DNA of 64,000 bases from Botryllus schlosseri (Eukaryota). Below are positions 1,774 to 61,660 of the stretch, one piece after another. Numbering within the stretch: the stretch's first letter is position 1; each line of letters begins with the position of its first letter. The DNA is taken from assembly GCA_051294905.1 (NCBI GenBank), contig CM119371.1, forward strand, positions 6,634,001 to 6,698,000. Reading direction: 5' to 3'. Below the pieces are notes generated by a model. The model was not told the origin of the DNA, did not search any database, and was given only the letters and a program-made list of their open reading frames with translations. Made by a program: the position numbers and the translations under genes.

Positions 1774-3402
1774 CTATCTCTTCACAAATACTGATTTGTA
1801 AATTGGAAAACATTGATCGACTTTTGGCTTCCCTATAGTCCATTTGTCTTGCGATATATCATACTTTTCAATTGCATCAGAAGTTTTTCCATCTGTTACT
1901 GCAAAAATGCACTTGTCAATGTGATATGCAGAAACTCGATAATGACAATCATTCATAGAAGATAATGAAGTCCACTGAGCTGAAGCAACATCGTAACATT
2001 CTACGTTGTCGACATAATTTATTCCTCTCCAGCCACCGATCACAAAAATCTTTTGATCAACTGCAACAACACCACTCACACAAATAGGATATTTCATTGG
2101 GTCGAGATCAACCCACTCTGATGAGGATGGAGTGAATCTGCAGAATGATGAAACTATGACACCACCTGGTCCTTCACCTCCGATACAATAGATGGAATCA
2201 TTCAATGATACGAGGCCTGCATCACATATCGCTGTAGGTTTGTCTTCTAGTTGAATCCATTTATTCAGGAGGTAAGTAAATATTTCCACAATACTTGTTG
2301 CTTTAGTATAACTTCCTCCAACAATAAAAATTGATCCCGACAAAGAAACTGAGCGAGGAAAGTATCCATGGTCACAAATCATATTTTTCATCTTTTCCCA
2401 TTTTGAATTTTTGCTCTGAAAATTGAGCCGATGAACTGATTTATTCTTACATAAAACGTAGATATGTGAGTCTAGAGAAATCGCTGAGAAATGTTTTAAA
2501 TTCGTAAACTTCTCATCATGAAACTTCTCTACTTTCTCAGTTACTGGATTGAAGGATCGGATACAATCTGCCTCATCATCAAAAAGAAGTATCAATTCAT
2601 CATCGCCAATTTCTTCATACTTGTTGTGCGATTCTTTTGGAGCTTCTAAAAGATGTCTTGTGATCAACTTGTACAATCCGAAGTCGTTTCTGATAATTTG
2701 GTTTGATTTCAAAAGACGCTCTAAAAATGCGGGAGAGACTTTATCAAACTTGACCGCTTCCAGACACTTGTGCAAATGTTCCTGATTTTCCCCATTTTTT
2801 TCAACCCAATTGAACAACAATGTTAGTTTGTCTTCTTCACATAACTTAGATTTTTTAGACTTCACATAATTGAGGATGTTAGTTTTTTCAGTATTTCCAA
2901 ATTCAGGTTGGTTTGATATTTCCATGATATTTTCATGTAAAAATGCTCTACATCGCGTAGAGACGGCATCCAGTCCATACATATCGGCGACATTTGTCGT
3001 GGAAAAGTAATTCTCCACATTAACTGATCCCTCCAAAATGTCAGATACTGCTTGTTTCACGTCATCCAACTGCATCATGACTGCGACATGTAAAAGATCA
3101 TTCATCTTTTCATCAAGAATCTCAAATTTACCCGAATATATGAAGTCGATGCAGCTTTTCACACACATAGAATCAACCTCTTTCAAAACAACTATTCCTT
3201 CACGACTTTCTTTGGTGTCGTGCTTTAACATCGCTTTGAAATAAGCACAACCAGCCGACAATACATTTCTGTGAGTGTAAAAGACATCATCTCCTACTTG
3301 AATTGTGAAATCACAATGATCGTTCTCTTGCTTCATTCGATGTAATTCTTCCATCATCTTCATTGAATGGTTCTCTACATTTGGACACACAATCTGCACC
3401 AT
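1774..3402 (-). CDS. BTB-BACK-Kelch (KLHL-like) protein, copy 1, intact, 542 aa
   Basis: Uninterrupted ORF. BTB motif (CDFTIQVGDDVFYTHRNVLSAGCAYFKAM), BACK region, and kelch blades with GG dipeptides and Y-D...W motifs. The track start at 3411 is TTG; the first ATG (3402, MVQIV) is the start shared by all paralogs. Confidence 0.95.
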   Translation of the reverse strand: MVQIVCPNVENHSMKMMEELHRMKQENDHCDFTIQVGDDVFYTHRNVLSAGCAYFKAMLKHDTKESREGIVVLKEVDSMCVKSCIDFIYSGKFEILDEKMNDLLHVAVMMQLDDVKQAVSDILEGSVNVENYFSTTNVADMYGLDAVSTRCRAFLHENIMEISNQPEFGNTEKTNILNYVKSKKSKLCEEDKLTLLFNWVEKNGENQEHLHKCLEAVKFDKVSPAFLERLLKSNQIIRNDFGLYKLITRHLLEAPKESHNKYEEIGDDELILLFDDEADCIRSFNPVTEKVEKFHDEKFTNLKHFSAISLDSHIYVLCKNKSVHRLNFQSKNSKWEKMKNMICDHGYFPRSVSLSGSIFIVGGSYTKATSIVEIFTYLLNKWIQLEDKPTAICDAGLVSLNDSIYCIGGEGPGGVIVSSFCRFTPSSSEWVDLDPMKYPICVSGVVAVDQKIFVIGGWRGINYVDNVECYDVASAQWTSLSSMNDCHYRVSAYHIDKCIFAVTDGKTSDAIEKYDISQDKWTIGKPKVDQCFPIYKSVFVKR

Positions 3403-3440
3403 GATTGTCAATCATCCACAATATGCTATATAGAATGATC

Positions 3441-3465
3441 CTATGATTATTATGATATAGTCAAG
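3441..3465 (-). other. Conserved splice-acceptor-like site upstream of the kelch ATG
   Basis: A branch-like T(T)RAC followed by ATAATAATCRTAG|GAT precedes the ATG in copies 1, 2, 3, 5 and 6 (AG at 3441-2, 11909-10, 28250-1, 45636-7, 61692-3). Confidence 0.5.
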
Positions 3466-3721
3466 CACTGTTATTGAAGTAAAGATGATTAGTAGGGCGA
3501 ATTTTCTTCACATGTCAAGAAGAGTCAAAATGGAAGCGTTATGTCAAAAATTGTGAACATTTTTTTGACGTCTGCATTTCGTTTGTATCGTAGATTATGC
3601 AATGTCGGTAGGCCTATTATTGGAAACGGCGAATCGTCTGCTCATTGTGAATCATAAACGGTCAAATGAAAAAAAATAGGTAGACATGGTATTATGGTCA
3701 ATGTGCCGCAATATCCTAACT

Positions 3722-4022
3722 CAGTGGTTGCCAACGTGGGCGATTTGGCGGTCTAGGAGGGCGAAAATGATGAATGGGGCGACAGGGGGGCATAAATGGA
3801 CAAAGGGGGCGACGGGGGGCGAAAACAGCAGAGGGGGCGATAGGGGGGCGATGACGCGTCAAACCAGCACAATTCGAGTCGACAATTTGACCTTTTATTT
3901 TAGTCAACCCGCCGGTGATTACAGTTTGTATGCCCAATTTTGGGTACACAAAATTTGGGGGGCGATGATTGGCGTTGACCTTGAAAAGGGGGCGATTGGT
4001 CGAAAAAGGTTGGGAACCACTG
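3722..4022. mobile_element. hAT (Buster/Charlie-type) MITE with GGGGCGA subterminal repeats
   Basis: TIRs CAGTGGTTGCCAAC / GTTGGGAACCACTG. Short relative of 13419-14833. Flanks are TCCTAACT and (G)TCTAACT. Confidence 0.8.
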
Positions 4023-4029
4023 TCTAACT

Positions 4030-4671
4030 CAGGGGTCGCCAACTCAAAACGGGTCGCGGGCCACTTTTCAAATTTCGCAGCGGCCGCGGGCCGCATGAAT
4101 TCAATATCGGTATAAACTAGGCTACCATCGTTTTAAAACTCTACGTCAGTACAACGCCGTGCTACTTAATTTAGGCAATGGGCGTAGTGACAACAAAAGA
4201 AGTAATATTTTATCAAAGGAATACAAATACAACAAAAAATCATTATCATTAATTTCATTTTATTTTGAAGTCTGAGCTGTGCACGATACTGGAAACGCTT
4301 TTAAGCGAATAAGAACTCGATATTGGGGCTAGCGAGATACGTTACTAGCTGAAAGACCATCTCCACGTAAAGCTTGATCTTGTGGGGCATCCCTAAGCCA
4401 GTGGTTCTCAAACATTTTTAGACACGCCCCCTCAATGATACTGAAAACTTTCGCTCCCCCTTATCATCATATCACAAAATGCAACCAGAATGCTAGCTAT
4501 CCCAATGGATAGTTTGATGGCATTGAAGGTTATCACTGTTGATACACAGAAAATTCACGGACCATACACACACTGCATTACAAAATGGTTTTCTCAGCTT
4601 TCTTCCGAAATCTCAAATCACGTCGCGGGCCGCAAAATATGACCTCGCGGGCCGCGTGTTGGAGACCCCTG
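4030..4671. mobile_element. hAT MITE with a partial MITE nested from 4399
   Basis: TIRs CAGGGGTCGCCAAC / GTTGGAGACCCCTG; 8-bp TSD GTCTAACT at 4022-4029 and 4672-4679. Confidence 0.85.
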
Positions 4672-6879
4672 GTCTAACTGAAGAAAGACTTCTTGGGCAT
4701 TGCATCATCCTTATATTGAGAAACGCATGATCAAAAATTGTGATGTAGACAACATTGTTAGAATGAAGCAACACGGTGTGTCACCAGCAGCGTACGCACA
4801 ACTTGAGTGTTGTCAGCCAAAAACTGCTGCTGTTGAACGGCCTTGGCAAGTTTCTTAGTAAGGACATGCACTTTCTATTCAAGAATATAGGAAAGTATCT
4901 CCCGTTGTACTACAAAGAATTTTAATTATTTCTACCATAATACAGAATGTAACCACTGGAATTCTTTATAGGGTCAGATTTCATTGAAATATTTTTTTTG
5001 TTCAAGTAAAAAGTTGCCTGTTTCTAAGCCAAAAACATTTTTTTCAGGCCAACCTTCGTTAGGACAGCCAGTTCCAACCAGAAATGAAGATAAGTGGTAC
5101 AATTTACATTATGTGGGAAAACACCTAATTTGCATTCATTAGTTCAAATGTTGGTAAAAATTCAGTTTGTTCAATTCAAAAAAAGTCAAAATTATAATTT
5201 TTTAGGTCAAAATTTTCTTTTTAGGTAACAAAAAAACGCCCCACTACTAGGCATTGGTCAGAAACGAAATTTATGAAGTAGTCAATTAGCATGTGTCTAG
5301 TCTACATGCCCTCAGTCAAATATTCAAGGACTAGGACTTGCAGTCTTTCTGAATCATGTGTTCGACCCATGCAGCTGAGCTACACTACAAATATTTTCAA
5401 TTTTGTCAAGTGGGAAGCAGCATTTGGTTATATTTACATCAATTTTACAATTTAACTAAACCAGACGATGTATTTACTCAGTCCCAGTATCATAGCATAT
5501 TTACAAAAATTGTATCAATTTGTGACTGCATCACAAAGATGAATATTGCGATTTTCATCCTCTGTGCAAGTGAATTGAATTTAAAAATGATGTCCAATTT
5601 TATCTATATCATTATTCATTACTATCATTGGCTGCAGCCTAATTTCCGTCTAAGCGGGAGTAATATGGCAGGTTTAGGCCAAGCAGTTCATATCAAATCG
5701 GTTTGCTCTCATGGGCACGAGAATGGCAAATGTCCATACCACAAGCTTAGCTCGTTTCGAGATATACAGTTCTTCTGTAGCATTTACGCGAAAACCGGAA
5801 AATAGATTAGAATTAAAATTAGAGCATAGAAACATTTCCCAAACTAAATCAGAATTAGAGCAAGGAAACAATACACGAATTAGATTTCTGGCATTTCAAT
5901 CTAATCAGTATAATTATACAAGTAAAATTATGTAGTTGCCCAAGTCTGTCTGGACGGTCTCTGCCTTTTCCGGTCAACTGTATAATTTGGGGGTCCGACT
6001 CGGGTTGTTACTTGACGCCCGCGGTGTGCTTCGCCTGGTCACTACATGTCAACAAAGTGAAGGAGGCGCTTTTTGTAATGAGTTCTCTCATGGCAAATTC
6101 GAAATTCTGTCGGTGTCTGATGCCGTCGTTGTGACAACCTGTGACCCAGGCAGGGGATCTGGAGTAAGAATTTTACGAATTCTTCGGTTGATTGGCTGCT
6201 TCGAGCTGCCACATTCTTACTCTCCTTGAAACGTCGCTCGGGTTTGGGCCAGTTTAGGTTCTCCTCAATCTGCGCAACATATTCAAGGGTTCAGTCAATA
6301 CCAGCATTGGAGTTTAGGGATTTCGATAAAGCATCTACACCAGCGGTCTTCAATATTTTTCGTATTGGTAGATACACCATTTTAAAGAATGCTTAAAACT
6401 TCTCCGCCTCAGTTCACATTATTCGTCGAATCTGTAGCGATCTTAATCAGAAGAGGGATCTTCCCTGCTGCAATCCATCGGAAATGCTAATGCAACAAAC
6501 AAATCAGCTTTCGACATAACTGAATCACAATCGAACACAGTGGTTTTCAACCAGAGTCTACGAAACAATATTAGGAAACCACGATCCGATTGATAAATAT
6601 AATTTGTGATATTGGAAGCTAGGGTAGACCAACACAAACCCAGCTCTCTGCACCGTCCAGCAAGATTCTAGGTTTCGAGTATGTATTTATGACCGATTCT
6701 CAAAACTACCTACAAAATTTATTAATTTTCAAAGACAGCACATTCTTCTTCCACCTGTAGTAGGCTACTTCTGGGTTGCTTGGAATAACATTACTTCTAC
6801 TTCACTACTTATACTGGAGTGAACTTTGCATTGCCATTTCTACTTGAGTAACTTATTTGACCCTTTCTGATTATGCATA

Positions 6880-10243: not shown

Positions 10244-11877
10244 TTATCTCTTCACAAATACGGATGTGTAAATTCGACAACATTGATCCACTTTTGGCTT
10301 AACTATAGTCCATTTGTCTTGCGATGAATCATACTTTTCAATTTGATTGGAGGCTTCAAAATCTTATACTACAAAAATCCAGTTGTCAATGTGATAAGCA
10401 TAAACTCGGCCATGACAAGCATTCATAGAAGATAATGAAGTCCACTGAGCCGAAGAAACATCGTAACATTCTACTTTTTCAAATTCCGTTTTTCCTCTCC
10501 TACCACCGATCACAAATATCTTCTGATCAACTGCAACAACACCACTCTCATAAATAGGATATCTCATTGGGTCGAGATCAACCCACTCTGATGAGGATGG
10601 AGTGAATCTGCAGAATGATGAAACTTTGACACCATCTTGTCCTGCACCTCCGATACAATAGATGGAATCATTTAATGATACGAGACTTGTTACACAAATC
10701 GCAGTAGGTTTATCTTCTAATTGAATCCATTGATTTACGAGGGAAGTAAACATTTCCACATCACTTGTTGCTCCATTATAACTTCCTCCAACAACAAATA
10801 TTGATCCCGACAAAGTAACTGAGCGAGGATCGGTTCCATGATCACAAATCATATCTTTCATCTTTTACCATTTTGAATTTTTGTTCTTAAAATAAAGTCT
10901 ATGAACTGATTTATCCTCACATAAAACGTAGATATAAAGGTCTAGAGAAATCGCCGAGAAATGTTTTAAATTCGTAAACTTTTCATCATGAAACTTCTCT
11001 AGTTTCTCAGTTACTGGATTGAAGGATAGAATAAAATCTGCCTCATCGTCAAAAAGAAGTATCAATTCATCATCGCCAATTTCTTCATTCTTTTGGTGTG
11101 ATGCTTTTGGAGCTTCTAAAAGATGTCCATTGATCAACTTGTACAATCCAAAGTCGTTTCTGATAATTTGGTTTGATTTCAAAAGACGTTCTATAAATCC
11201 CGGAGGGACTTTATCAAACTTGACGGCTTCGAGACACTTGTGCAAATGTTCCTGATTTTCACCATTTTTTTCAACCCAATTCAACATCAATGTTAGTTTG
11301 TCTTCTTCACATAACTTCGATTTTTCAGACTTCACATAATTGAGGATGTCAGTTTTTTTAGTATTTCCAAATTCAGGTTGGTTTGATATTTCCATGATAT
11401 TTTCATGAAAAAATGCTCTACATCGCGTAGAGACGGCGTCCAGACCATACATATCGGCAACATTTCTTGTGGAAAAGTAATTCTCTACATTAAGTGATTT
11501 CTCCAAAACATCAGATACTGCCTGTTTCACATCATCCAACTGCATCATGATTGCGACATGCAGAAGATCATTGATCTTTTCGTCAGGAATCTCAAATTTG
11601 CCCGAATAGGCTATATGAAATCGATGCAGTTTTTCACACACATAGAATCGACCTCTTTCAAAACAACTTTTCCCTCACGACTTTCTTTGGTGTCGTGCTT
11701 TAACATAGCTTTGAAATAAGCACAACCAGCCGACAATACATTTTTATGACTGTAATAGACATCATCTCCAACTTGAATTATGAAATCACAGTGATCGTTT
11801 TCTTGCTTCATTCGATGTAATTCTTCCATCATCTTCCCTGAATGTTTCTCTACATTTGGACACACGATCTGGACCAT
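10244..11877 (-). pseudogene. KLHL-like copy 2, pseudogene
   Basis: Full-length alignment to copy 1 with three lesions: a 5-bp insertion creating TAGGCTA at 11607-11613 (frameshift), an in-frame TAA at 10865-10867 and an in-frame TAA at 10364-10366. The original stop is retained at 10244-10246. Confidence 0.92.
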
Positions 11878-12208
11878 GATTGCCAATCAACCACAATATT
11901 CAAGGATCCTACGATTATTATAATAATAGTTAAACACTGTTATTGAAGTAAATATTATAGCCAACTTAAGTAAAATACCTGTTGAAGTTGAAAGAATCAT
12001 AAAACTTATTAACGTCACGAGTTGAATGAACGAGGAATTGAAGGAAAGTTAACGAAGGCGAACACTGAACAGTGCAGTTCTGCAGTTATGAATGTTGTAT
12101 AATTTTATATTACGTTATATTCCACGAATGGCCATATCGGTTTCATGCAAGATCGTCATATCGCAAAGCTTGGTTAAAAATTGCAGCAACACGAAAGATC
12201 ACGCTGGT

Positions 12209-12245
12209 TTCACTCCGTGTTTGGAAACGAAATCAGCGAAGCATG
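12209..12245. promoter_or_regulatory. 37-bp invariant upstream block containing GAAACGAAA (also at 29809-29845 and 61942-61978)
   Basis: TTCACTCCGTGTTTGGAAACGAAATCAGCGAAGCATG is identical in three paralogs whose flanks differ. Regulatory function is inferred only. Confidence 0.45.
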
Positions 12246-13185: not shown

Positions 13186-13418
13186 GCTAAATGATGCCAG
13201 TTACCCAAAACTACTTTTTACTTTCCAAAACCAGGGATATCTAGAACTAGAACTCTATATATCCCTGTCCGAAACTCAAGGTAGTTTGCATCATCATTGG
13301 TTTATTAGCAATTTTATCAGTTCAATACACCACAAACATGCGATACAATGAAAAGACAGAAAGATGTCGAAGCGACAAGGAGTAGTCTATGGAATCTGAC
13401 ACCCACCTTGGCCTAGGC

Positions 13419-14833
13419 CAGTGGTTCCCAACCTTTTTCGACTCATCGCCCCCTTTTCAAACTCCAGACCGATCATTGCCCCCCAAATATTGGGAACCGA
13501 AAAATGGGCATACAGACTGAAATCACCGGCGAGTTGACTAAGAAAAAAGGTAAACTTTTCGGCTCGACCTCGAAATTACAATTTTCCAGCTAAATTTTGG
13601 TGAGTTGACTAACAAAAAAGGTGATTTCTCCGACTTGATTCCAAAAGGACCGTAACAGCATTTCGTCAGCCCCCCCCCAATACGTTGGTCTTGACCCTCC
13701 TCCATAGGGCGATAAAGCAAACTTCTGCACCCTTAGACCAAACTCCCTCGATACCTCTTTACCGCTACTTCTCAGCACAATTTATTGGACTCTTTAGTGA
13801 CTAATCAGTCGGCTTAATTCGCGCGAAGCGCGAAAAATTTCTATCATTCATGATTGAATCGGTGAATATGATCGGGAATTGCACATATATTGCTGTCAAT
13901 TTTTTATCATCTCTCTGCTCATCTATTCAGATTTACCGGTAACGCTGAGTGAGGTGTCTTGGAAAATGTAGGGCTCGTAAATATTAATTGAACATATTCG
14001 GGCGGACCCGTGGGTATACTGACTCCGTTACGTTATGACATTTCGTGGCCTGTCTGTTATGTCAAAAGATATTCAAATCGCCCATACGTACTAAACTAAA
14101 AGACGCACACGATTTCAAATTGGTATTTCTGCACTGGCAATTAATTTTTCTCTGCGAGATGGCATTTTTTGTGGGGTCTTGATTGCCAGGACAGAAACAT
14201 TTGGCGCCACCCGTTTAAGCGCCCATGGACAATTAAATATATATATGTATATAGTATATATATCGAAGTCGGTCAGCATAAAGGCAGTCCTTTTCCGCCG
14301 AGGTTTTCTCATTCTGGCACACTTCTCGGAGTCGCATGTTACATGGCCTGAAACTTTATATCTCTTGGTGCGATAATGGCTGACGCCGAGATGCCCATTT
14401 TTGGTTCGATAATGGCTGACGCCGAGATGCCCATTTTCGGTGCGATAATGGCAGACGCCGAGATGCCCATTTCTATAACTCATGCGTATTATTTCTTGGA
14501 GGAAGGGTAACCAATAAGCAATAAATATGTGACCACGAAATGGCGCGCAGCGCGAAATTTTTTGGAAAAAGTTGCCTTAATTTCCAAAATAATACTTTAT
14601 AATTTCATTATTGTTAATTCACGAAAAAACTGTGGTCCCCCCATCCCAATTGAGGGTTTGGGTGTGGCAATTATGGTCATGAACGCCAATATAGCCATTT
14701 CAACGCGCAATCGCCCCCCTATCGCCCCCTTCGTCCATTTTCGCCCCCCTATCGCCCCCTTGGCTATTTTCGCCCCCCCTGGACCGACAAATCGCCCCCT
14801 GGGGGGCGATATCGCCCACGTTGGGAACCACTG
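13419..14833. mobile_element. Non-autonomous hAT (Buster/Charlie-type) element, 1415 bp
   Basis: TIRs CAGTGGTTCCCAAC; perfect TSD GCCTAGGC at 13411-13418 and 14834-14841. The empty site (single GCCTAGGC) is visible in the LINE copy near 63221. Confidence 0.95.
14367..14472. repeat. 36-bp tandem repeat, about 3 copies
   Basis: The GGTGCGATAATGGCTGACGCCGAGATGCCCATTT unit starts at 14367, 14403 and 14439. Confidence 0.95.
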
Positions 14834-15845
14834 GCCTAGGCGATGTAAAGAGGAGGCATGCACACTGAATGAAAGTAAAGAAGATAGTATAGAAAAAGAA
14901 TGCGACAAGAAATAGGGCGGCATGTCATGGGAAGCGAGATCGATAGGTCAGTCGTGGTACGGTAATCTTGAGGATGGACAATATTTATTTAGTAGTAATT
15001 GCTTGTATTTCGACTTGAATGTGGACATGCTCGTCGACTGTCGGATGGCCGGCGGGATACTGTTCCACACATCAGGTCCGGCATATTTGATGGAGCGATG
15101 ATCTTTTCGGTCGATCATATGATATTTGGACGACGTGGACGCGCGTGTGTTGTACTTGTGCGCTTTTGATTCAGAGGTAAAGAAGTCATTGAAATATTCG
15201 GGGCAACGACCGCAGTGAAACTGATACATAAACTTGGCCATTTCTAGTTTCCGCATATCTTCTATGTTTAGGACGCCGAATCTCTTCAGCGGCGACTTAT
15301 TGGATGGGCAGCCAGGACCCTTTGGGGCCCTATAGCTATGATTCGGAGTACTTTATGCTGTAGTTTCTGCAGTGGCTTGAGTGCAGTTTTTCTGGCAGCC
15401 CCCCAACAGAGGATGCCATAATGTAACTTCGATTGGATTAAGGATTTAATGAGTATCAGAAGAACCCATGCTGGCATGAAGCGCCCAAGGCTGTAGAACA
15501 GGCCGCACTTCGGTGATAATTTAGTTTCTAGGGACTGAATATGACTCTTCCAGGACATGTTCGAGTCCAGGTAGAACTCCGAGATATTTGGCATTATCTG
15601 TGTTGGAAACGGGCCGATATTAACGGTTACGTTATTTTTTGAATTTACTGTCAGCAATTGCGATTTCGAGGCGTTTATGCAAAGGTTGTTCTGGGCCGTC
15701 CACTCATGGACTTTTGGCATTTGGTCACCAGTCAGGGCATCCAGCTCTGCCGTCGAAGATGCGGAAGAGAGGAGGTGAGTATCATCAGCGAACAGTGTGT
15801 CTGTTCAGGTAGTAGCTTAATGTTCTAAAAAGATTGTCAGTACTT

Positions 15846-26602: not shown

Positions 26603-28216
26603 CTATCTCTTCACAAATACAGATCTGTAAATTTTAAAACATTCATCTACTTTTGGTGTCACTATTGTCCATTTGTCTTGTGATATATCATACTTTTCAA
26701 TTGTACTAGAGGTTCCTCCATTTGCTACTGCAAAAATCCACTTGTCAATGTGATATGCAGAAACTCGACCATGACAAGCATTCATAGAAGATAATGAAGT
26801 CCACTGAGCTGAAGTAACATCGTAACATTCTACGTTGTCGACTTTATTGAGTTCATGTATTCTTCCGCTTTTCCCACCGATCACAAATATCTTTTGATCA
26901 ACTGCAACAACACCACTCACACAAACAGGATATCTAATTGGTTCGAGATCAACCCACTCTGATGAGGATGGAGTGAATCTGCAGAATGAAGAAACTACGA
27001 CACCATCTGGTGCTATACCTCCGATACAATAGATGGAATCATTCAACGATACGAGACTTGGTGAACGAATTGGTGTAGGTTTATCTTCTAGTTGAAACCA
27101 TTGATTTACGGGTGTAGTAAATATTTCCACATCACTTGTTGCTTTATTATAACTTCCCCCAACCACGAATATTATTCCCGACAATGCAACTGAGCGAGGA
27201 TTCGTTCCATGATCACAAATCATATCTTTCATCCTTTCCCATTTTGAATTTTTGCCCTGAAAATTGAGTCGATGAACTGATTGATTCTCACATAAAACGT
27301 AGATATGCGAGTCTAACGAAATCGCCGAGAATTGTTTTACATTCGTAAACTTCTCATCATGAAGAACCTCTACTTTCTCAGATAATGGATTGAAGGATCG
27401 GATACAATCTGCGTCATCATCAAAAAGAATAATTTCTTCGTTGGTTTTCTGTGATGCATTTAAAGCTTTCAAAAGATGTCCATTGATCAACTTGTGCAAT
27501 CCCAAGTCGTTTGGGTTTGATTCCAAAAGACATTCTAAAAATGCCGGAGAGACTTTATCAAACTTGATTCCTTCCAGACATTCGCACAAATGTTCCTGAT
27601 TTTTCCGATCTTTCTCGATCCAATTGAACAATAACCTTAGTTTTTCTTCTTCGCATAACTTTGATTTTTCCGACATCACAAATTTGAGGATGTTGGTTTT
27701 TTCAATACCTCCAAATTCAGGTTGGTATGATATCTTCATAATATTTGCAATAAAAAACGCTCTACATCGCGTAGAGAGCGCATCCAGTTCATACATATCG
27801 GCGACATTTCTTGTGGAAAAGTAATTCTCTACATTAACTGACTCCTCCAAAACATCAGATATTGCCTGTTTCACGTCATCCAACTGCATCATGATCGCGA
27901 CATGAAGAAGATCGTTCATCTTTTCATCAGGAATCTCAAATTTGCCCGAATATATGAAATCGATGCAGTTTTTCACACACTGTGAATCGACCTCTTTCAA
28001 AACAACTTTTCCTTCGCGACTCTCTTTGGTGTCGTGCTTTAACATAGCTTTGAAATAAGCACAACCAGCCGACAATACATTTTTGTGAGTGTAATAGACA
28101 TCATCTCCCACTTGAATTATGAAATCACAATGATCGTTTTCTTGCTTCATTCGATGTAATTCTTCCATCATCTTCACTGAATGTTTTTCTACATTTCGAC
28201 ACACACTCTGCACCAT
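26603..28216 (-). CDS. BTB-BACK-Kelch (KLHL-like) protein, copy 3, intact, 537 aa
   Basis: Uninterrupted ATG-to-stop ORF, colinear with copy 1, ending VFVKR. Confidence 0.95.
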   Translation of the reverse strand: MVQSVCRNVEKHSVKMMEELHRMKQENDHCDFIIQVGDDVYYTHKNVLSAGCAYFKAMLKHDTKESREGKVVLKEVDSQCVKNCIDFIYSGKFEIPDEKMNDLLHVAIMMQLDDVKQAISDVLEESVNVENYFSTRNVADMYELDALSTRCRAFFIANIMKISYQPEFGGIEKTNILKFVMSEKSKLCEEEKLRLLFNWIEKDRKNQEHLCECLEGIKFDKVSPAFLECLLESNPNDLGLHKLINGHLLKALNASQKTNEEIILFDDDADCIRSFNPLSEKVEVLHDEKFTNVKQFSAISLDSHIYVLCENQSVHRLNFQGKNSKWERMKDMICDHGTNPRSVALSGIIFVVGGSYNKATSDVEIFTTPVNQWFQLEDKPTPIRSPSLVSLNDSIYCIGGIAPDGVVVSSFCRFTPSSSEWVDLEPIRYPVCVSGVVAVDQKIFVIGGKSGRIHELNKVDNVECYDVTSAQWTSLSSMNACHGRVSAYHIDKWIFAVANGGTSSTIEKYDISQDKWTIVTPKVDECFKIYRSVFVKR

Positions 28217-28814
28217 GATCGTTGATCAACTATACAATATATAATGATCCTACGATTATTATAATATAGTCAAGCAAGCTGTTATTGAATTAAACATGAT
28301 TAGTTAACTCTAGTAATGCCTGTTGAAAGAATCATAATACGTATAATAACGTCACGGGTATGAATTGAAGGAAATTCAACTACACACAAGATGAACACTG
28401 AACAGTGCTAAATCAGAGGCATCCCTGCCATAATGCAGTTATGAAAACTTCTTCCATCGATTTGCCCAAGTTTTATTTGTTGTATTGACACGAAACCAAA
28501 GAGTTATTGCGGTCGATTACCACCACCTCGCGAATGATCGAGTTGATTACCGGTAATCTAAATTGTATTTTGGAACATCAAAAATAATTTCATACTGTGG
28601 TATATTCCAGGGGCGGCCGCATCTGTTTCAATATATATATCTATATATATATAATATAACGACTTTCAATTAAATAAAAGGGCAAAAGAAAACAGGAAAC
28701 AAAAGAACATCAAGATAATCAGTTTTGGCCCAAAACTGTTTCAATGCTCCAACCGAACATCACAAAGATTGGTTTTAAAGTAGCCGCAACACGAAAGATC
28801 ACGCTTATTTCACT

Positions 28815-33799: not shown

Positions 33800-34440
33800 T
33801 CCTCGAGCGTTTGATGGCTGGCTTGCCCCAACGAACAAGATTATCCCAGTACTACCGCAAATACAAAATTCTAAAATTTGACGATATTTTTACATTTGAA
33901 GTAGCTAAATTTATGCATCAATATTTTTCAAATGAATTGCCTCCTGTGTTTAATGATTTCTTCGCCCTTGCTCAAACTGTTCACTCACATAATACCAGAT
34001 TTTCTTCCCAAGGTAACATCTATTTTCATCGACCCACAAGTAACCTCACAAAGAAATCGATCGACTATGCCGGTCCTGTCATATGGAATGCTATACCCTC
34101 ATCAATACGGGACATCCCATACCACTCCTTCAAAAAGGAATTATTCAGTCACCTCATCTCCCGTTACCAATGATCCGCTTGTCTCACACCAATTTTTTTA
34201 GTTTCTTCAGTATTTTATTTTTATGCTGAGCTGAATTGATTGATCCCAACCAATGCATCCAAATTTATGACACGATATCTGTATTTGTTAATGCAGGGTG
34301 TGATCAGACTAGTTGACCCTACCCAGAGTCATATCGGTCACACCCTGTCCTATACCGTTAAGTTCATTTATTGTTGTTTCATGTGCCAATGATGTTTTCT
34401 TTACGGTTGGACAAATCAATAAATATCTCTCTCTCTCTCA
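33800..34440 (+). mobile_element. 5'-truncated CR1/L2-clade-like LINE 3' end (second family)
   Basis: ORF 33811-34173 has AKFMHQY...HSHNTR...YAGPVIWN; tail AATAAATATCTCTCTCTC; the paralogous region near 18975 lacks the insertion. Confidence 0.85.
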
Positions 34441-42123: not shown

Positions 42124-43134
42124 CTATCTCTTCACTAATACGGATTTGAAAATTTTAAAACCTTGATCTACTTTTGGCGTAACTATAGTCCATTTGTCTC
42201 GCGATATATCATACTTTTCAGTTTCATCAGAGGTTTCGCAATCTGTTACTGCAAAAATGCACTTGTCAATGTGATACGCAGAAACGCGACCGTGACGAGC
42301 ATTCATAGAAGATAATGAACTCCATTGAGCTGAAGTAACATCGTAACATTCTACGCTGTCGACTTCTATTCCTTTTATCCACCCCCCGATCACAAATATC
42401 TTTTGATCAACTGCAACAACACCACTCGCACAAACAGGATATCTAATTGGGTCGAGATCAACCCACTCTGATGAGGATGGAGTGAATTTGCAGAATGAAG
42501 AAACTATGACACCATCTTGTCCTCTACCTCCGATACAATAGATTGAATCATTCAATGATACGAGACTTGTATTTCGAATCGCGGTAGGTTTGTCTTTTAG
42601 TTGAAACCATTGATTCGTGAGGGAAGTAAATATTTCCACGTCACTTGTTGCTTTAGTATAACCTCCAACAACGAATATTGATCCCGGCAAAGAAACTGAG
42701 TAAGGAAAGTATCCATGATCACAAATCATATCTTTGATCCTTTCCCATTTTGAATTTTTGCTCTGAAAATCGAGTCGATGAACTGATTATCACAACATAA
42801 AACGTAGATATACGAGTCTAAAGAAATCGCCGAGAAATGTTTTAAATTCTTAAACTTAACATCATGAAAATTCTCTACTTTCTCAGTTACTGGATTGAAG
42901 GATCGGATACAATCTGCGTCATCATCAAAAAGTATTATCGATTCATCTTTGCCAATTTCTTCGTTTGTTTTCTGTGATGCTTTTAACAGATGTCCATTGA
43001 TCAACTTGTACAGTTTGAAGTCGTTACTGATAATATGGTTTGATTCCAAAAGACGTTTTAAAAATGCCGGGGAGACTTTATCCAACTGGATTGCTTCGAG
43101 ACATTCGCGCAAATGTTCTTGATTTTTGCGATTT
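42124..43134 (-). pseudogene. KLHL-like copy 4, 5'-truncated pseudogene (kelch plus part of BACK; BTB lost)
   Basis: Homology to paralogs stops at about 43134, where the sequence joins the 3' flank of copy 5 through a TGGTTCA x3 filler. There is also a 1-bp deletion near 42788-42790 (frameshift). Confidence 0.92.
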
Positions 43135-43974
43135 GGTTCATGGTTCAATGGTTCATTTTGAGTGTATCTTGATCATGGATGGAAAAAACTAATGATAGTT
43201 TTTGAATCAGCGTCCCCAAATTTGTCATAAACAATAAGATAACAAGATGAAGAACAATTTCATTGGCTCTTATTAGGCCTACATTGTTGAAAGTTGATCA
43301 TTGTTAATCCACGATATTCAAAAAGTAAGAGAGCCATATAAACTTGTAACTTGTAACCTAAGCTCTATTTGGAAGCACATACTGTTGTGAGTATACCTTT
43401 TGAAGAGCGAATAACGTGTGCAAATATCGTATGCGGCTAAACAAACAAACAAACACTCGTATGAGATTTTCATGCATTGAGCAGCCCTATCATGTGCTGT
43501 GGGTTATTTCATAGTGAATTACGGGATGTTTAAAACTTGAACAGCCAACAGCAGAGGTGTCAAAATCAAATTGCGTCGCGGGCCGTATTCTAGCCTTCAA
43601 ATCGCTCTGAGGCCAGACAAGTCAACTAATGGAAAATTGTTACCTTGTGCTCTTGATTTTTCCTTGAATACGTTAAAAGCACTATAATAGATAATACACG
43701 GATCAATGGGTCTTTAAAGCGACTTGCTAGATCCAGATGGCTGACGGTAAAGAGTAGCTCAAGTTTCAGATTTTGGAAGCGAGTAATTCTAGTGTTATCG
43801 CTTAGGGCGAATAGTGATACTGGTGCTTCAAACACCGTCGAATTCTCAAACCCGTTCTTTTGAAAGGCATATTCTATTACCAACTCAGTAATTTGCATTT
43901 CAAGTACTGCAGTCTTTACGGAACTGAAAATCCATTTTTTGTACCAGTCTGCTCAGGTGACTCATGAGAGCAAT

Positions 43975-45597
43975 CTATCTCTTCACAAGTATGGATTTGT
44001 AAATTCGGCAACTTTCATCTACATTTGGTTTCACTTTAGTCCATTTGTCTTGTGATATATCATACTTTTCAATTGCATTAGAGGTTTCTCTATCTGTTAC
44101 TGCAAAAATCCACTTGTCAATGTGGTACGCAGAAATTGGACCATGACAAGCATTCATAGAAGATAATGAAGTCCACTGAGTTGAAGTAACATCGTAACAT
44201 TCTACGCTGTCGACAATCTTTAATTCTCTCCTCACCCCGCCGATCACAAATATCTTTTGATCTACTGCAACAACACCACTCGTAGATACAGGATATCTCA
44301 TTGGGTCGAGGTCAACCCACTCTGATGAGAATGGAGTGAATCTGCAGAATGATGAAAGTGCAACACCACCTGGTCCAATGCCTCCGATACAATAGATGGA
44401 ACCATTCAATGATACAAGACTTGTTGATCGAATCGCAGTAGGTTTGTCTTTTAGTTGAAACCATTGATTCACCAGGGAAGTAAATATTTCCACATCACTT
44501 GTTGCTTTATAACCACCTCCTCCAACAACGAATATTGATCCTGACAAAGAAACTGAGCAAGGACGCCATCCATGGTCGCAAATCGTATCTTTCATCCTTT
44601 CCCATTTTGAATTTTTGCTCTGAAAATTGAGTCGATGAACTGATTTACTACGACATAAAACGTAGATGTAGGAATCTAGAGAAATCGCTGAGAAATGTTT
44701 TAAATTCTCAAACTTCTCATCATGAAACTTCTCTACTTTCTCAGTTACGGGATTGAAGGATCGGATAGTATTTGCCTCACCATCAAAGAGAATGATCAAT
44801 TCATCATTGTCAGTTTCTTTGTCTGTTTTCTGTGACGCTTTCAAAAGATGTCCAGTGATTACCTTGTACAATCCAAAGTCGTTACTGATAATTTGGTTTG
44901 ATTCCAAAAGACGTTCCAAAAATGCCGGAGAGACTTTATCAAACTTGATTGATTCTACACATGCGTGCAAATGTTCCTGATTTTTACGATTTTTTTCAAC
45001 CCAATCAAACAGTAACGTCAGTTTATCTTCTTCGCATAACTTTGATTTTTCAGACATCATAGATTTGAGCAGGTTAGTTTTCTCAATATTTCCAAATTCA
45101 GGTTGGTTTGAAATTTCCATGATATTTTCATGAAAAAATGCTCTACATCGTGCAGAGACGGCATCTAGTCCATACATATCGGCAACATTTCTTGTGGAAA
45201 AGTAATTCTCAACCTCAATTGATTCCTCCAAAATGTCAGATACTGCCTGTTTCACGTCTTCCAATTGCATCATGATTGCGACATGAAGAAGATCATTAAT
45301 CTTTTCATCGGGAATCTCAAATTTTCCCGAATATATGAAATCGATGCAGTTTTTCACACACTCAGAATCGACCTTTTTCAAAACAACTTTTCCTTCACAA
45401 CTCTCTTTTGTGTCGTGCTTTAACATCGCTTTGAAATAAGCACAGCCAGCCGACAATACATTTTTGTGAGTGTAATAGACATCATCTCCCACTTGAATTG
45501 TGAAATCACAGTGATCGTTCTCTTGCTTCATCCGATGTAATTCTTCCATCATCTTCACTGAGCGTTTCTCTACATTTGGACATACAATCTGCACCAT
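43975..45597 (-). CDS. BTB-BACK-Kelch (KLHL-like) protein, copy 5, intact, 540 aa
   Basis: Uninterrupted ORF. The track start at 45606 is TTG; the ATG is at 45597. Confidence 0.95.
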   Translation of the reverse strand: MVQIVCPNVEKRSVKMMEELHRMKQENDHCDFTIQVGDDVYYTHKNVLSAGCAYFKAMLKHDTKESCEGKVVLKKVDSECVKNCIDFIYSGKFEIPDEKINDLLHVAIMMQLEDVKQAVSDILEESIEVENYFSTRNVADMYGLDAVSARCRAFFHENIMEISNQPEFGNIEKTNLLKSMMSEKSKLCEEDKLTLLFDWVEKNRKNQEHLHACVESIKFDKVSPAFLERLLESNQIISNDFGLYKVITGHLLKASQKTDKETDNDELIILFDGEANTIRSFNPVTEKVEKFHDEKFENLKHFSAISLDSYIYVLCRSKSVHRLNFQSKNSKWERMKDTICDHGWRPCSVSLSGSIFVVGGGGYKATSDVEIFTSLVNQWFQLKDKPTAIRSTSLVSLNGSIYCIGGIGPGGVALSSFCRFTPFSSEWVDLDPMRYPVSTSGVVAVDQKIFVIGGVRRELKIVDSVECYDVTSTQWTSLSSMNACHGPISAYHIDKWIFAVTDRETSNAIEKYDISQDKWTKVKPNVDESCRIYKSILVKR

Positions 45598-47625
45598 GAT
45601 TGTCAATCATCCACAACAGGATATATATTATGATCCTACGATTATTATGATATAGTCAAGCACTGTTATTGAAGTAAGATGGTTAGTAGAGCGATTATTT
45701 TGACAAGTCTAAAAAAGTCAAAATTGTTCACAAAGTCAAAAAAATTTAGACGTCCGCATTTCGTTCATATCGTAACTATACTGTATGCACTGTCGATGAA
45801 CTTATGTGATATTTTACAGCTTGTAGCCTATTTTATAGGCCTACCGTTGTAGACGGTGCATTGTAAGCTCATTGTGAATCATAAACGGTTACATGCACAC
45901 ACACACTCTCACACTACTAAGGTAATAAACATTCGTCATAAACGAAATTTATGAAGTAGTCAAATAGCATGTCTAGTCTACATGCACTTAGTCAAGTATT
46001 CAAGGACTAGGACTTGCAGTCTTTCTTAATCATTTGTTAGACCCAAGCAGCTGAGCTACACTAGAAATATTTTTAATTTGGTCAAGTGGGAAGCAGCGCT
46101 TGGTTATATATGTAACATCAATTCTACAACTTAACTAAACCAAACGATGTATTTACTCAGTCACAGTATCATGGTATAATGCCAAAACTTTCATCAATTT
46201 ATGACTGCATCGCGAACATGCATATTGCAATTTTCGTCATCTATGCAACTGAATTGTAATTTACAAATGATGCCCAATTTTATCAATATCGTTACTAATA
46301 ACAGGGATTGATGGCAGATATGGGGTAATCGCGATTAGTAATCGTAATCGATTACGACGATTACAGCATTTTGAATTAATCGTAATCGCAATCGATTACA
46401 TTAGAAAAAATCCCAAGTAATCGTAATCGTAATCGACTACTTCCCATATCTAATCGATTTCTTTGTGAAAGAACGATTACTTTTTGTTTGTACAAGGACT
46501 ATGACATAAACTGAATATTCGTGAACAAGAATGAGATAATATACCACGTCAACATTAGCACAAACGTCTGATTTTCAAACGCCACTACTCCTTATTACGT
46601 CAGAAGTATTAGCTCCGCTCGTCATTGCGTAAGAAAACAGACATGCGATGGACATTGTAGTGTGATTGTAAGAACATCCCGTGGTGTATATCAGGTTATC
46701 AATACACTACAGACGCCCCTACCTCGCAGCAGGATATTGATTGCCATTCTGCCTATAGTTTCGAATAGTAACATATGTATTGATGTTTAGTTGTGCTTAG
46801 TTAAACGCAGTTTTACCGTTGCTGCTTGGCGAGCAGTAGGCCTATGTACGCACGTACACCTGACAAAGATTCGGAATTTTGTACTCGTCGAATAAAACAT
46901 TGCAGTTTCCACAACGAAGCATTACAAATAAACAGCTGCTGATATATATCATAACCGAGCCGTGCTTAGCCGTTTCTCGTAACAGCCGCTCGCAGTATAT
47001 GTATTAAGTTGGCGGAAGAATTTTTATGTTCATTATATCTTATTCTCATCTAACTACTTGAAACGGGCGCCAATCGTTATTTCACAGTTCGTTACTCAGC
47101 ATTTGGACCTGCCGTCATAACCATTCGCTTATATAGCCTGACCCTGACATATTAGCGTGGGTTTCAGAACCAAAACAGCAATTCGTCCCCCAGTCCAACC
47201 GTTGCTCAATTTTCAAAACTGAGTTTCGTCAATAATATTGATAATTGCATTATATTACTATTCATTTTAACCTCTCTAAGCCCCGAGTGTCAGATTTACC
47301 TGTAGAGCTGGTACGTAATCCATAATTAAAGCATCTGGTATGTTGTTATAATTACTTTATTGTATGTTGGAAATTCGTGACCTCCAGTCTGTTGTATAAT
47401 GATAAGATATTGTACTCGCCCAAACGTAGCAGACTAAAAGAAAATCTTTCGTGAGACGCGCACACAAATTTTCATGGCTTTATTCTTTTGTGAATGCGCA
47501 GGGTGGCATTTGCATTGTGGGCTCAGATTGGAAGGACAGGACTTATTTGTCACGCCCACCCAGCGCGGCTATTGACAATGGACGAACACCCCAAGTTTCG
47601 GCTAAGGTATTTCTTTGGTATCACA

Positions 47626-55185: not shown

Positions 55186-55585
55186 TAGGGTTACCATTAC
55201 CTCCTCTTTTTTGACGTTCATGAAAATGTCCTCCGAGGACGCCTAAATGTCTTTCTTTTTGGCAATTCGTCCTCCTTTACAGCTTTTACGACTAAGATAA
55301 TGGAGAGATTCAAGTGAAAATGGGCATATGTGACGCTAAATAGGAAATTTGTGGTTTGATCGAAAGTGACAACATTTTTTTTTCAAGTCAACACCACTGA
55401 TTTTAAGTAAAAAGTCTGTAAAACAGGAGTCGAACCAAAGTGATGACCTTCTTTTTTCAGTCAAGCAACCATCAAGTAAAGAAAAAATGTAACATTTTTT
55501 CCGAATGTTTCTCCTGTATTGTAAGTCTGAAAATTTTGAACGTGTCCTCTTTCCAGATTTCCAAAATATGATAACGGTAACCCAA
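55186..55585. mobile_element. hAT-like MITE (TAGGGTTACC TIR)
   Basis: TSD TTGGAAAA/TCGGAAAA; empty paralogous sites near 6780 and 36100. Confidence 0.85.
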
Positions 55586-57546: not shown

Positions 57547-60018
57547 GTATAGAGCATAGGTTCTTGAACGCCGGTCTGCCAAATATATTGGAACTTTATA
57601 TCTCAATTCCAAAACGCAAGAAGATAGACGCTTGTCCATCTTTAGAGAAATACAACATCACATGTGAAGTTAATTTGGAAGTTTGTAATGCATTTTCTGC
57701 ATGCTGTCATTATAGAGAGTTCATGGTGTACTTTGAGCGTACATAACAATGGTGCAACTGTTGTACAAAACTGTTCGGAAGTAGCATACAACTTCAGATT
57801 AGGTATATGTGCAAGCTACAGAGACTATTAAACAAATTTCGTTAAATTCCAACAGTCCAATTAAGCACTTGACAGTATGATGAAGACTATAGCAAACAGG
57901 ATAGTTGCATTTCTTTTGAAGGATACTGAACACTCACAATCAAGTAAGCGGTCTCAACCATGAATTTGTGAGCTTCAACCACGGTCGCAACTAACGAATA
58001 CAGAGGCGTGCATGAATGAATGTTTCCAAATAAGATTTCCAGGAGAACATGCGACATGGGCGAGAAAAGCTATTGGCCATAACTCAATTGTTCTATTCGC
58101 AGGCACGCGCGGGTCAATCAGTTCCTACAAACTGGAAAAATATCTTCAGCGTAGGAACAAATTGAAAACTGGTATCATCATGTAAACTTCATCAATCAAT
58201 TCTTCAATACTTAGGTAGGTCAAATGTCAAATGTTGTCCATCGTAATTGTGACTTAAAAATACGCACCCATATAAAACCCACCTTGAATGACAATTGGTA
58301 AACTTGTTCGAAAGTTGCGACTTGTTTGACTCTGATCGAAAGAGAATCCTTGCCTGTGACGATAAAGAATATATACATCGGGTTAGAAACGATTCAAATT
58401 CACTCAATGTGTTGAGACTTGTTGTTACAGATAGATATAAGATCTCTACTAGTGGTTGAGTTGGGTTCATAGTGAATAATTTTATCATTTAAAAAAACAC
58501 CATAGCATTGATGGCAATAATCGAATCCAAAATCATTGATTTTATGAACAGATGAATTCAGAATTACTCACTTTTATCTTCCGAGTAGAATTGTCACACA
58601 TTGATGCATGTCAGATTTCAACTGATTGAGATTGTCATGCGAGTTACCAAAGCAAATTCACATCCGCCGAACAGACTATTCAATGATATGTTGTATATGA
58701 TGATATTCTAATTGCAATCCACTGTAACAAAATCAAGAGTGATTATGAATTTAAGTAAAATCAATGAAGGCATAGGCCTACACCACAGGTTTCTCAAACC
58801 TGACCATCTTACCAGAAGATGTGGCAGATATCGAGTAGCCGATAGCCACCTCATATAAACATGATCAAAATGGTCTGTTTTGGGTATGCGTACAAATTTG
58901 GTATCTTGATCATGGATAGTAAAATGAAAGACATTTTTTGAATCAGCGTCCTCTAAATTCGTCAACCGCAATTAATAGACCATGACAAGCAAAAATTTAT
59001 TCCTATGGTATTTCGTACTTAATCATTGTTTATCCACGATTCTCATAAAATTAGATAGGCATACAAATTTGCAACTTATAACCTAAGCTCTATTTGGAAT
59101 CACATACTGTTGTGATGATAAGGCCTTTGAAGAGTAAACAAATATGGTATGCGACTCAACAAAAGAGAGATCATCCACAGTCCACACTCATTTCAAATTT
59201 TCATATTGAGTCATTTAGTACTGCGGTTTATTTCATATTGAATTATTGGAAGTGTAGAACTTACACCGTTTACAGTAATCAGTAGGTTCTCAACTCCTGA
59301 TATTGGTCATAATAAAACCATTGTGGTATCAATTGTCAAAGCCATCGACCGTATCTGTATTGAGTAAGGAAGTAAATATATGATGGGCATTATCAACTAA
59401 AATTGGCAGCAGTATTATGCACTTTCGTACAAGTCCACAAAATTACTGGTTACTATTGCCACGACATTCATCAAATGATACGAATCTGGCGAAAAGTAGT
59501 TTACACAAAATTTAAAAAAACAGAATGTACGAAGTTCTACCGATTTGACAAAGCAATTATGTCGGATATAGCTTGATGAGTCGAAAATTTCAATTGAGCG
59601 ACTTAATTCTTATTCATGTCTCAGCAGCAGACTTGTACAAACTACGGTACCAATCTAGTTACTTGACGGTTGAGAGTAGTTCTAATTACAGTTTGTGAAA
59701 GCAAGTAGTTCATGTGTTTATATTAGTGTGATTACCAACAGTGGCATAGTCATGGGTGGGTTGCAGACCGTTACCTTTCGAACTATAAACAAAATTCTTT
59801 TCAAACACCGATTCTATCTCCGATATTTTCAAGCTCATCTCAAATTCAGTGATTCGCATTATCTGTATTGCGATTGCCAGGTCGCCAGTTACGAATTTTC
59901 AAAGCATGTTAAGCGTATTTCTAGTAGCCAGTTTCGAAAATTGAGTGGTTCTAGTTCTACGTCAAGTTGTATTTTGAAGATCCAGTAATTTGTGCAAGTC
60001 TGCTCAGATGAGTGCAAT

Positions 60019-61660
60019 CTATCTCTTCACAAATACGGATGTGTAAATTTCAAAACATTCATCTACTTTTGGTATCACTATAGTCCATTTGTCTTGCGAT
60101 ATATCATACGTTTCAATTGCATTAGAGGCTTCTCCATCTGGTACTGCGAAAATCCACTTGTCAATGTGATACGCAGAAACTGGACCATGACAAGCATTCA
60201 TAGAAGATAATGAAGTCCATTGAGCTGACGTAACATCGTAACATTCTACGGTGTCAATTCTCTTTTCTCCTCTCCAGCCACCGATGACAAATATCTTTAG
60301 ATCAACTGCCACAACTCCACTCCCCCAAACAGGATATCTCATTGGGTCAAGATCAAACCACTCTGACGAGGATGGAGTGAATCTGCAAAATGATGAAACT
60401 GTGACACCATCTTGTCCGATACCTCCGACACAATAGATGGAATCATTCAACGATACGAGGCTTGTTGATTGAATTGCGGCAGGCTTGTCTTTTAGTTGCA
60501 CCCAATGATTCAGGGGAGAAGTAAATATTTCCACATAACTTGTTGCTTCAGAATAACTTCCTCCAATAACTAATATCGATCCTGACAAAGAAACTGAGCA
60601 AGGATCGATTCCGTGATCACAAATCATATCATTCATCTTTTCCCATTTTGAATTATTTCTCTCAAAATTGAGTCGATGAACTGATTTATCGTCACATAGA
60701 ATGTAGATGTATGAGTCTAGAGAAATCGCCGAGAAATGTCCTAAATTCCAAACGTTCTCATCATGAAACTCATCTACTTTCTCGGTTACTGGATTGAAGG
60801 ATCGGATACAATTTGCGTCATAATCAAAGAGAATTATCAATTCATCATTGCCAATTTCTTCGTTCATTTTGTGTGATGCTTTTGAAGCTTTCAAAAGATG
60901 TCCAGTGATCAATTTGTACAGTCCTAAGTCATTACCAATAATTTGGTTTGATTCCAAAAGACATTCTAAAAATGCCGGAGAGGCTCTATCAAACTTGATT
61001 GCTCCGAGACATTCGTGCAAATGTTCCTGATTTTTGCGATTTTTCTCAACCCAATTGAACAATAACGTTAGTTTTTCTTCTTCGCATAACTTTGATTCTT
61101 CCAACTTCACAAAATTCCGGATGCAAGTTTTTCAAATATTTCCAAATTCAGATTGGATTGAAATTTCCATGATATTTTCATGAAAAAATGCGCTACATTG
61201 CATAGAGATTGTATCCAGTCCATACATATCGGCGACATTTCTTGTAGAAAAGTAATTCTCTACATTAAGTGATTCCTCCAAAACGTCAGAAACGGCCTGT
61301 TTCACGTCTTCCAACTGCATCATGATTGCGACATGAAGAAGATCATTCATCTTTTCCTCAGAAATCTCAAATTTGCCGGAATATATGAAATCTATGCAGC
61401 TTTTCACACACAGAGAATCGACCTCTTTCATAACAACTTTTCATAACAACTTTTCCTTCACGACTTTCTTTGGTGTCGTGCTTTAACATAGCTTTGAAAT
61501 AAGCACAACCAGCCGACAATACATTTTTGTGAGTGTAATAGACATCATCTCCCACTTGAATTATGAAATCACAATGATCGTTTTCTTGCTTCATTTGATG
61601 TAATTCTTCCATCATCTTCACTGAATGTTTCTCTACATTTTGACACACAATCTGCACCAT
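60019..61660 (-). pseudogene. KLHL-like copy 6, pseudogene
   Basis: A 13-bp tandem duplication TCATAACAACTTT (61428-61453) frameshifts the BTB, and there is an in-frame TGA at 61132-61134. The rest is colinear with the paralogs. Confidence 0.92.

Follow-up and report, generated by a model that had tools for sequence, protein, structure and literature searches.

A young tandem array of BTB-BACK-Kelch genes in Botryllus schlosseri whose predicted substrate pocket has probably been diversified by positive selection

We examined a 64,000-nt stretch of the Botryllus schlosseri genome (GenBank assembly GCA_051294905.1, contig CM119371.1, positions 6,634,001 to 6,698,000; hereafter the window), which carries a tandem array of genes for BTB-BACK-Kelch proteins of the predicted Cullin-3 (Cul3) adaptor type. 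The window is AT-rich (GC ~0.36-0.45). A tblastn search with copy 1, the first long open reading frame (ORF), as the query revealed six homologous copies (C1 to C6), all on the minus strand and spanning 1774-61660. The coding sequence of each is one uninterrupted exon. The copies are as follows, with codons counted from the ATG.

1774-3402, minus strand: C1, intact BTB-BACK-Kelch gene, 542 codons, ATG at 3402 (ORF, Pfam, AlphaFold2 model, Foldseek)
~2638-3402, minus strand: BTB-BACK part of C1 (Pfam, AlphaFold2 model)
~1777-2598, minus strand: Kelch propeller of C1 (Pfam, AlphaFold2 model)
10244-11877, minus strand: C2, pseudogene (DNA alignment, lesion coordinates)
26603-28216, minus strand: C3, intact, 537 codons (ORF, Pfam, alignment)
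42124-43133, minus strand: C4, 5'-truncated pseudogene (tblastn, alignment, self-comparison)
43975-45597, minus strand: C5, intact, 540 codons (ORF, Pfam, alignment)
60019-61660, minus strand: C6, pseudogene (DNA alignment, lesion coordinates)

Only C1, C3 and C5 are intact. In these three, Pfam recognized a BTB domain (PF00651, 78-79 bits against a cut-off of 20.5), followed by a BACK domain (PF07707, 45-52 bits against a cut-off of 20.9) and by Kelch_1 repeats scoring 88-96 bits, above the curated cut-off. The pseudogenes carry few lesions. C2 has a frameshifting 5-bp insertion (11609-11613) and in-frame TAA codons at 10865-10867 and 10364-10366, and C6 is frameshifted by a 13-bp insertion (61443-61455), a tandem duplication, and further interrupted by an in-frame TGA codon (61132-61134). 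Homology in C4 begins at 43133 (~codon 203), so that the BTB domain is missing, and a 1-bp deletion lies between 42788 and 42789.

The original prediction described six paralogs that are nearly invariant in the BTB domain and the blade cores, and that differ sharply in certain loops. Six copies are indeed present, but the BTB motif occurs in five of them, because C4 is truncated upstream of ~codon 203, and only three are intact. The BTB motif, the blade-core motifs and all of the quoted loop strings, including the sets YFPR/TDPR/TNPR/YFPY/WRPC/IDPC and CDAG/CVTS/RSPS/RNTS/RSTS/QSTS, were recovered in the alignment. Indels in the loop after the GG are in-frame (0, +3 and +12 nt). This loop is longest in C3 (+12 nt), whose disordered BACK-Kelch linker also bears two in-frame deletions. 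The contrast between core and loop is not due to chance, with a dN (nonsynonymous divergence) of 0.22 in the top loops against 0.066 in the strands, and a similar dS (synonymous divergence) of 0.28 and 0.22, respectively.

An AlphaFold2 model of C1, built from a 35-sequence alignment, had a mean confidence (pLDDT) of 91.7, with disorder confined to the BACK-Kelch linker (residues 257-266). The BACK region is helical over residues ~132-253, and the 3-box was judged from this helical model alone. Secondary structure assignment with DSSP showed six four-stranded blades, the last of which (blade VI) is closed by a C-terminal strand (residues 533-541). The full-length Foldseek matches were Cul3 adaptors whose structures were solved with Cul3 (KBTBD2, KLHL22, KBTBD4), and the Kelch domain matched KLHL12 and KEAP1 at template-modelling (TM) scores of 0.81-0.85. 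In a HMMER alignment with full-length KEAP1, the T-K-E of C1 aligned with L-R-E, the φ-x-E motif that contacts Cul3, and its Glu (E65) was near-invariant across the 35 relatives. By homology, C1, C3 and C5 are inferred to be of the Cul3 substrate-adaptor type, with predicted Cul3 binding and ubiquitin-ligase function. The BTB-BACK half, which is conserved here, would correspond to the part that dimerizes and binds Cul3 in known relatives.

Selection was compared between regions by the Nei-Gojobori method, using structural classes set beforehand from the DSSP string of the model. The ω (dN/dS) was 0.29 for BTB-BACK, 0.30 for the blade strands, 0.43 for the bottom loops (AB and CD) and 0.81 for the top loops (DA and BC), with the BC loops alone reaching 1.19 (1.06-1.42 between intact copies). 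The dS was ~0.2-0.33 in all pairs and all regions, and alike across the structural classes (0.22-0.30). The BTB domain had an ω of 0.12-0.30 and a dS (0.19-0.39) equal to that of the Kelch domain. Because dS is even across the gene, the conservation of BTB-BACK is due to purifying selection and not to gene conversion.

Codon site models, fitted with our own Goldman-Yang likelihood code (F3x4 codon frequencies, all branch lengths optimized), rejected neutrality. Site models were also the kind of test that the original prediction had proposed. For the six copies, twice the log-likelihood difference (2ΔlnL) was 62.8 for M1a against M2a (p = 2e-14, with ω2 = 8.3 at 3% of sites), 72.9 for M7 against M8 and 64.4 for M8a against M8. 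In 20 data sets simulated under the fitted M1a, the likelihood-ratio test (LRT) statistic ranged from 0 to 7.4 and exceeded 5.99 once, which shows that the code behaves properly under the null.

Several artefactual sources of ω > 1 were considered, using the M1a/M2a comparison throughout. Pseudogene decay was rejected, since the three intact copies on their own gave a 2ΔlnL of 22.2 (p = 1.5e-5) and the pseudogene branches were not significantly relaxed. Misalignment at the indel-bearing loop was rejected, since removal of that loop left a value of 49.8. Recombination was rejected as well. A permutation test resembling the pairwise homoplasy index (PHI) was not significant in the Kelch domain alone (p = 0.59), no tract in any pair stayed significant in a GENECONV-like test once corrected, and the signal persisted with the Kelch domain on its own tree (64.6) and with a star tree (67.0). 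No conversion effect thus removed the signal. Multi-nucleotide mutations were also modelled, and the signal stayed significant when double and triple changes were allowed (36.3). Finally, hypermutability of the loops was rejected, since loop dS is close to strand dS and the test remained significant when synonymous and nonsynonymous changes shared gamma-distributed site rates (25.0). With rate variation and multi-nucleotide changes combined, the 2ΔlnL was 18.9 (p = 8e-5, with ω = 5.2 at 4.4% of sites).

The signal is concentrated in the top loops. When these were fitted separately, the LRT statistic was 49.3, with 12% of the 112 codons at ω = 8.7. All other codons together gave 2.5 (p = 0.28, not significant). 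Ten residues had an M2a posterior above 0.9 (300, 319, 347, 348, 394, 442, 458, 461, 463 and 533 in C1 numbering, MVQ = 1), and M8 added residue 379. DA and BC loops account for nine of the ten, an enrichment that is significant by Fisher's test both for the Kelch domain (p = 0.0016) and for the entire protein (p = 4e-6). The exception, residue 533, opens strand A of blade VI and adjoins a DA loop. Seven of the ten are in ungapped, well-anchored columns, and the selected pocket positions show four to five different residues among the six copies. Two neighbouring selected codons are located as follows.

2362-2367, minus strand: C1 residues 347-348, selected pocket codons in the DA loop that connects blade I to blade II (site posteriors, DSSP)

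In KLHL proteins, the DA and BC loops shape the substrate pocket, which is located on the upper face of the propeller (Canning et al., PMC3597819). The original prediction had pointed to these loops as the substrate pocket of KEAP1- and KLHL3-type proteins, and it is there that positive selection was concentrated. Residues of C1 were related to human KEAP1 through a HMMER alignment with chain 6wcq_C, the numbering of which was converted by subtracting 7, an offset that we derived ourselves and checked by residue types. Within-blade register in this alignment is reliable and blade identity is not, because Kelch blades are repeats. C1 V442 aligned with KEAP1 R415, E410 with R380, W458 with F478 (or, in the alternative repeat register, with S431), Y463 with R483, and C393 and D394 with S363 and G364. 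We take R380 to be a pocket residue too. R415, R483, S363 and F478 have been named at the Nrf2-binding pocket of KEAP1 (PMC6891428). Several of the selected residues thus coincide with substrate-binding pocket positions of KEAP1, and the three intact paralogs offer a natural experiment in Kelch specificity.

These results support positive selection on the presumed substrate pocket together with birth-and-death evolution. Positive selection would have driven the divergence of a dozen or so DA and BC codons on the top face of the propeller, in loops that also carry in-frame indels. Because these loops have diversified, each intact paralog presents a different predicted substrate pocket, and we infer different targets for the different copies. 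The locus is probably a young tandem array of ascidian-specific, Cul3-adaptor-type BTB-BACK-Kelch genes, the predicted pocket of which was diversified by positive selection.

Several observations weigh against this reading. The site models are our own implementation, not PAML or HyPhy, and the alignment comprises six sequences, of which three are pseudogenes. Mosaicism is detectable over the whole gene (PHI-like p = 0.008). Loop ω, which the original prediction expected to exceed 1, does so clearly at the level of individual sites, whereas the average over all top-loop codons is ~0.6-0.8. In the putative Cul3-contacting motif, the φ position is Thr and not hydrophobic. Lastly, RNA reads from three bulk RNA-seq subsamples (1.1-1.9 Gb each), mapped at 96% likeness to the region of C4 and C5 (41900-45900), numbered 36, 4 and 31, all of them partial fits, and depth over C5 was below ~1.

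Most of these reads sit on a repeat at 45786-45900, where depth was far above that of the surroundings (summed contig word depth ~4100 in one run). The reads there run on into unrelated sequence, so they represent a dispersed transcribed repeat and not a C5 transcript. The sole hint of transcription came from a small run labelled 'RNA?', which contained 34% of the sampled words of C5. In a fourth run, the type of which is uncertain, short contigs covered genic and intergenic parts alike, so that it was uninformative. A run labelled with the name of a second organism contained 27% of the C5 sampled words (43975-45606), and DNA runs contained at most 52%. This partial cover likely reflects high polymorphism, or a closely related taxon with a near-identical copy.

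A search of two very large protein collections gave as the nearest proteins P0001 (54% identity), P0007 (45%) and P0002 (43%), all of them unnamed and each encoded on a single short contig assembled from public sequencing runs (Logan). The next relatives are ~30% identical and of the same length class. They include Styela clava 'kelch-like protein 12/30/5' (XP_039264566.1, XP_039254024.1, XP_077976160.1), which have 526-552 aa and align in a single, near full-length stretch, but share only ~29-31% identity with the array proteins. A single ascidian-expanded group appears to include both the array proteins and these paralogs. Vertebrate KLHL/KBTBD adaptors (KEAP1, KLHL12, KLHL3, KBTBD2, KLHL22) share the BTB, BACK and six-bladed Kelch architecture, the fold, with the Kelch TM scores given above, and the aligned φ-x-E Glu, and the loops that vary in the array are the ones that build the pocket there (PMC3597819). 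The array differs from them in its low identity (18-24%), compact length (~540 aa), single-exon coding sequence and Thr at φ, and in being a young tandem set with pseudogenes. The pocket residues of KEAP1 are conserved, whereas those of the array are under positive selection. Since the relatives found are at most 54% identical and vertebrate KLHLs 18-24%, the array represents an ascidian-lineage branch without a one-to-one vertebrate ortholog.

Self-comparison of the window showed that the flanks are homologous between copies, at 75-83% identity compared with 85-89% for the coding parts. The flanks were therefore duplicated with the genes, and the array grew by tandem segmental duplication and not by separate retropositions. 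The tree of the six copies is star-like with long terminal branches, and C1+C2 is the sole supported grouping. A gene-plus-flank unit of ~15 kb would have been duplicated in a burst, as suggested by this tree and the dS of ~0.2-0.3. Birth-and-death would have followed, with three copies held intact by purifying selection and three inactivated recently. In a branch model, ω at constrained sites was 0.40 on pseudogene terminal branches compared with 0.27 on intact ones. This difference was not significant, and inactivation of C2, C4 and C6 is therefore recent. The birth-and-death family proposed from the sequence is thus borne out by the tandem, lineage-specific arrangement, the co-duplicated flanks and the three recently dead copies.

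The stop codon of C5 and the truncated start of C4 are separated by only ~830 bp (43134-43974). The segment at 43164-43390, just upstream of C4, is homologous to the sequence that normally follows the other copies (58901-59115), which indicates that a large deletion joined C5's downstream flank directly to the interior of C4. This deletion, of ~14 kb, would have taken out the intergenic DNA along with some 200 codons from the start of C4. Two types of upstream flank are present, one in C1 and C5 and the other in C2, C3 and C6 (regions 3403-3760, 11878-12235, 28217-28574, 45598-45955 and 61661-62018). Downstream, the flanks of C1, C3 and C5 are of one type and those of C2, C4 and C6 of another, the latter three having ~450 extra bp in common. 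These flank types conflict with the coding tree, and this shuffling implies that unequal crossing-over belongs to the history of the array. The alternating types suggest that a two-gene unit was duplicated, that unequal crossing-over yielded chimeric copies, or both.

Rapidly diversifying ubiquitin-ligase adaptors, such as MATH-BTB, F-box and TRIM proteins, are thought to mark intracellular conflicts. Thomas reportedly described, in 2006, positively selected expansions of MATH-BTB and F-box adaptors. Primate TRIM5/TRIM22 form a tandem cluster of E3 type, in which selected sites and indels fall in short surface loops of the recognition domain; they belong to the RING-B30.2/SPRY class of E3 ligases and have proven antiviral targets. 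The array resembles this cluster in its tandem arrangement and in its loop-focused selection and indels, and differs in its E3 class and in being known from sequence alone. Closer in kind are the adaptor expansions of nematodes and grasses (MATH-BTB, or BATH) and of nematodes and plants (F-box; PMC4091423, PMC8120010). They share with the array lineage-specific tandem expansion, birth-and-death turnover of cullin-ligase adaptors, a conserved cullin-binding module and positive selection on the substrate-binding domain. They differ in that recognition is by MATH or FBA/FTH domains, and here by a Kelch propeller in a tunicate. The pattern of the array is thus of a kind already known from MATH-BTB, F-box and TRIM5 proteins, and no report of a diversifying pattern in BTB-Kelch genes of an animal host was found in the literature searched.

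The nature of the targets admits more than one explanation. It is possible, though short of probable, that each copy was selected for a different host protein (e.g. a gamete, allorecognition or developmental protein, perhaps itself fast-evolving), with no ongoing conflict with a parasite. The star-like tree with long terminal branches accords with such neofunctionalization, since the changes could be episodic and post-duplication. Moreover, known KLHL substrates are host proteins (PMC3597819), and the Styela clava relatives are annotated as ordinary kelch-like proteins. However, half of the array has decayed, which fits turnover better than a stable division of labour, and the same few pocket positions have undergone replacement repeatedly and independently, which suggests continued pressure.

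Rather unlikely, in our estimate, is an immune or genome-defence repertoire, as envisaged in the original prediction, in which the pockets recognize pathogen or transposon proteins for Cul3-dependent degradation in a host-parasite arms race. The array bears the signature of conflict genes, namely tandem expansion, pseudogenes and selection limited to the recognition surface, with a parallel in the nematode and plant MATH-BTB and F-box families (e.g. PMC4091423). The same signature is, however, produced by reproductive genes, by self/non-self recognition genes and by neofunctionalization after duplication, and expression was not detected in the three RNA subsamples mapped to the C4/C5 region. 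Endogenous fast-evolving substrates fit the data equally well. Tunicates are the closest invertebrate relatives of vertebrates. The more far-reaching proposal of a large germline-encoded repertoire of tunicate BTB-Kelch Cul3 adaptors, with pockets acting as TRIM5-like intracellular restriction factors that degrade viral or retroelement proteins, seems improbable. The near-identical BTB domains might permit heterodimers, multiplying the number of specificities. Identification of the targets of the diversified pockets would reveal what a sea squirt must degrade in a fast-changing way, be it parasites, transposons or self-recognition proteins.

A role outside ubiquitin ligation was also considered, either as a scaffold binding actin or the cytoskeleton, or as decoys sequestering Cul3 or partner BTB proteins. 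Cytoskeletal roles have been reported for some BTB-Kelch proteins, and the Thr at φ would suit such a role. On the other hand, the Glu of the motif is kept, the BTB and 3-box/BACK architecture is under purifying selection (see the BTB ω above), and every one of the top full-length structural matches is a Cul3 adaptor complexed with Cul3, making this role decidedly unlikely. Absence of any adaptive signal, with loops that are simply unconstrained or an artefact of the kinds treated above, is very improbable: the top-loop class-average ω at or below ~1, the three pseudogenes, the significant whole-gene PHI-like test and the drop of the LRT statistic from 63 to 19 under the combined model favour it, but the LRT was significant under every control, null simulations were as expected, loop dS is close to strand dS, seven of the ten sites are in ungapped columns, the Kelch domain has no recombination signal and there are no significant conversion tracts, and three ORFs of ~540 codons at such divergence would not be kept by neutral decay.

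The alignment of upstream sequences revealed a conserved block directly abutting the ATG.

3403-3500, minus strand: conserved ~95-nt block abutting the ATG (upstream alignment)
11878-11975, 28217-28315, 45598-45700 and 61661-61760, minus strand: the same ATG-proximal block in other copies (upstream alignment)

Mean pairwise identity in this block is 83% (last 100 columns), like that of coding sequence, compared with ~50-56% further upstream. It includes an A/T-rich, TATA-like stretch and an invariant acceptor-like TTCAATAACAG followed by TG, with the TTCAATAACAG lying ~75-100 nt upstream of each ATG (e.g. 3475-3500). The block is presumably the 5' untranslated region (5'UTR) and core promoter. 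The TTCAATAACAG-TG resembles a 3' splice acceptor or a spliced-leader acceptor; if it is one, the transcripts may be trans-spliced, or the 5'UTR may contain an intron. No recognizable spliced leader was present on contig L001 of a relative, which is possibly genomic.

Between the copies, just degraded repeats and tails resembling long interspersed nuclear elements (LINEs) were observed. The possibility that another gene family (C2H2 zinc fingers or UNC-93) is interleaved with the array was considered and rejected, as there was no zinc-finger pattern and no frame-specific conservation between copies. Ten intergenic ORFs had no Pfam match, and a search for non-coding RNAs gave no Rfam match. Pro/Arg/Gly-rich ORFs overlap on opposite strands at 3686-4096 (both strands), 13372-13566 and 14529-14923; they have no Pfam match, and look like a repeat family rather than genes. 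An inverted pair of ORFs at 14951-15352 (minus strand) and 62758-63111 (plus strand), with a weaker relative at 33856-34167 (plus strand), has 95% protein identity and 98% DNA identity over 472 bp. The pair has no Pfam match, and resembles the C-terminal tail of ORF2 of a non-LTR (long terminal repeat) retrotransposon of the LINE type. The 98% identity of the inverted pair suggests that the element was active recently and inserted itself into the array.

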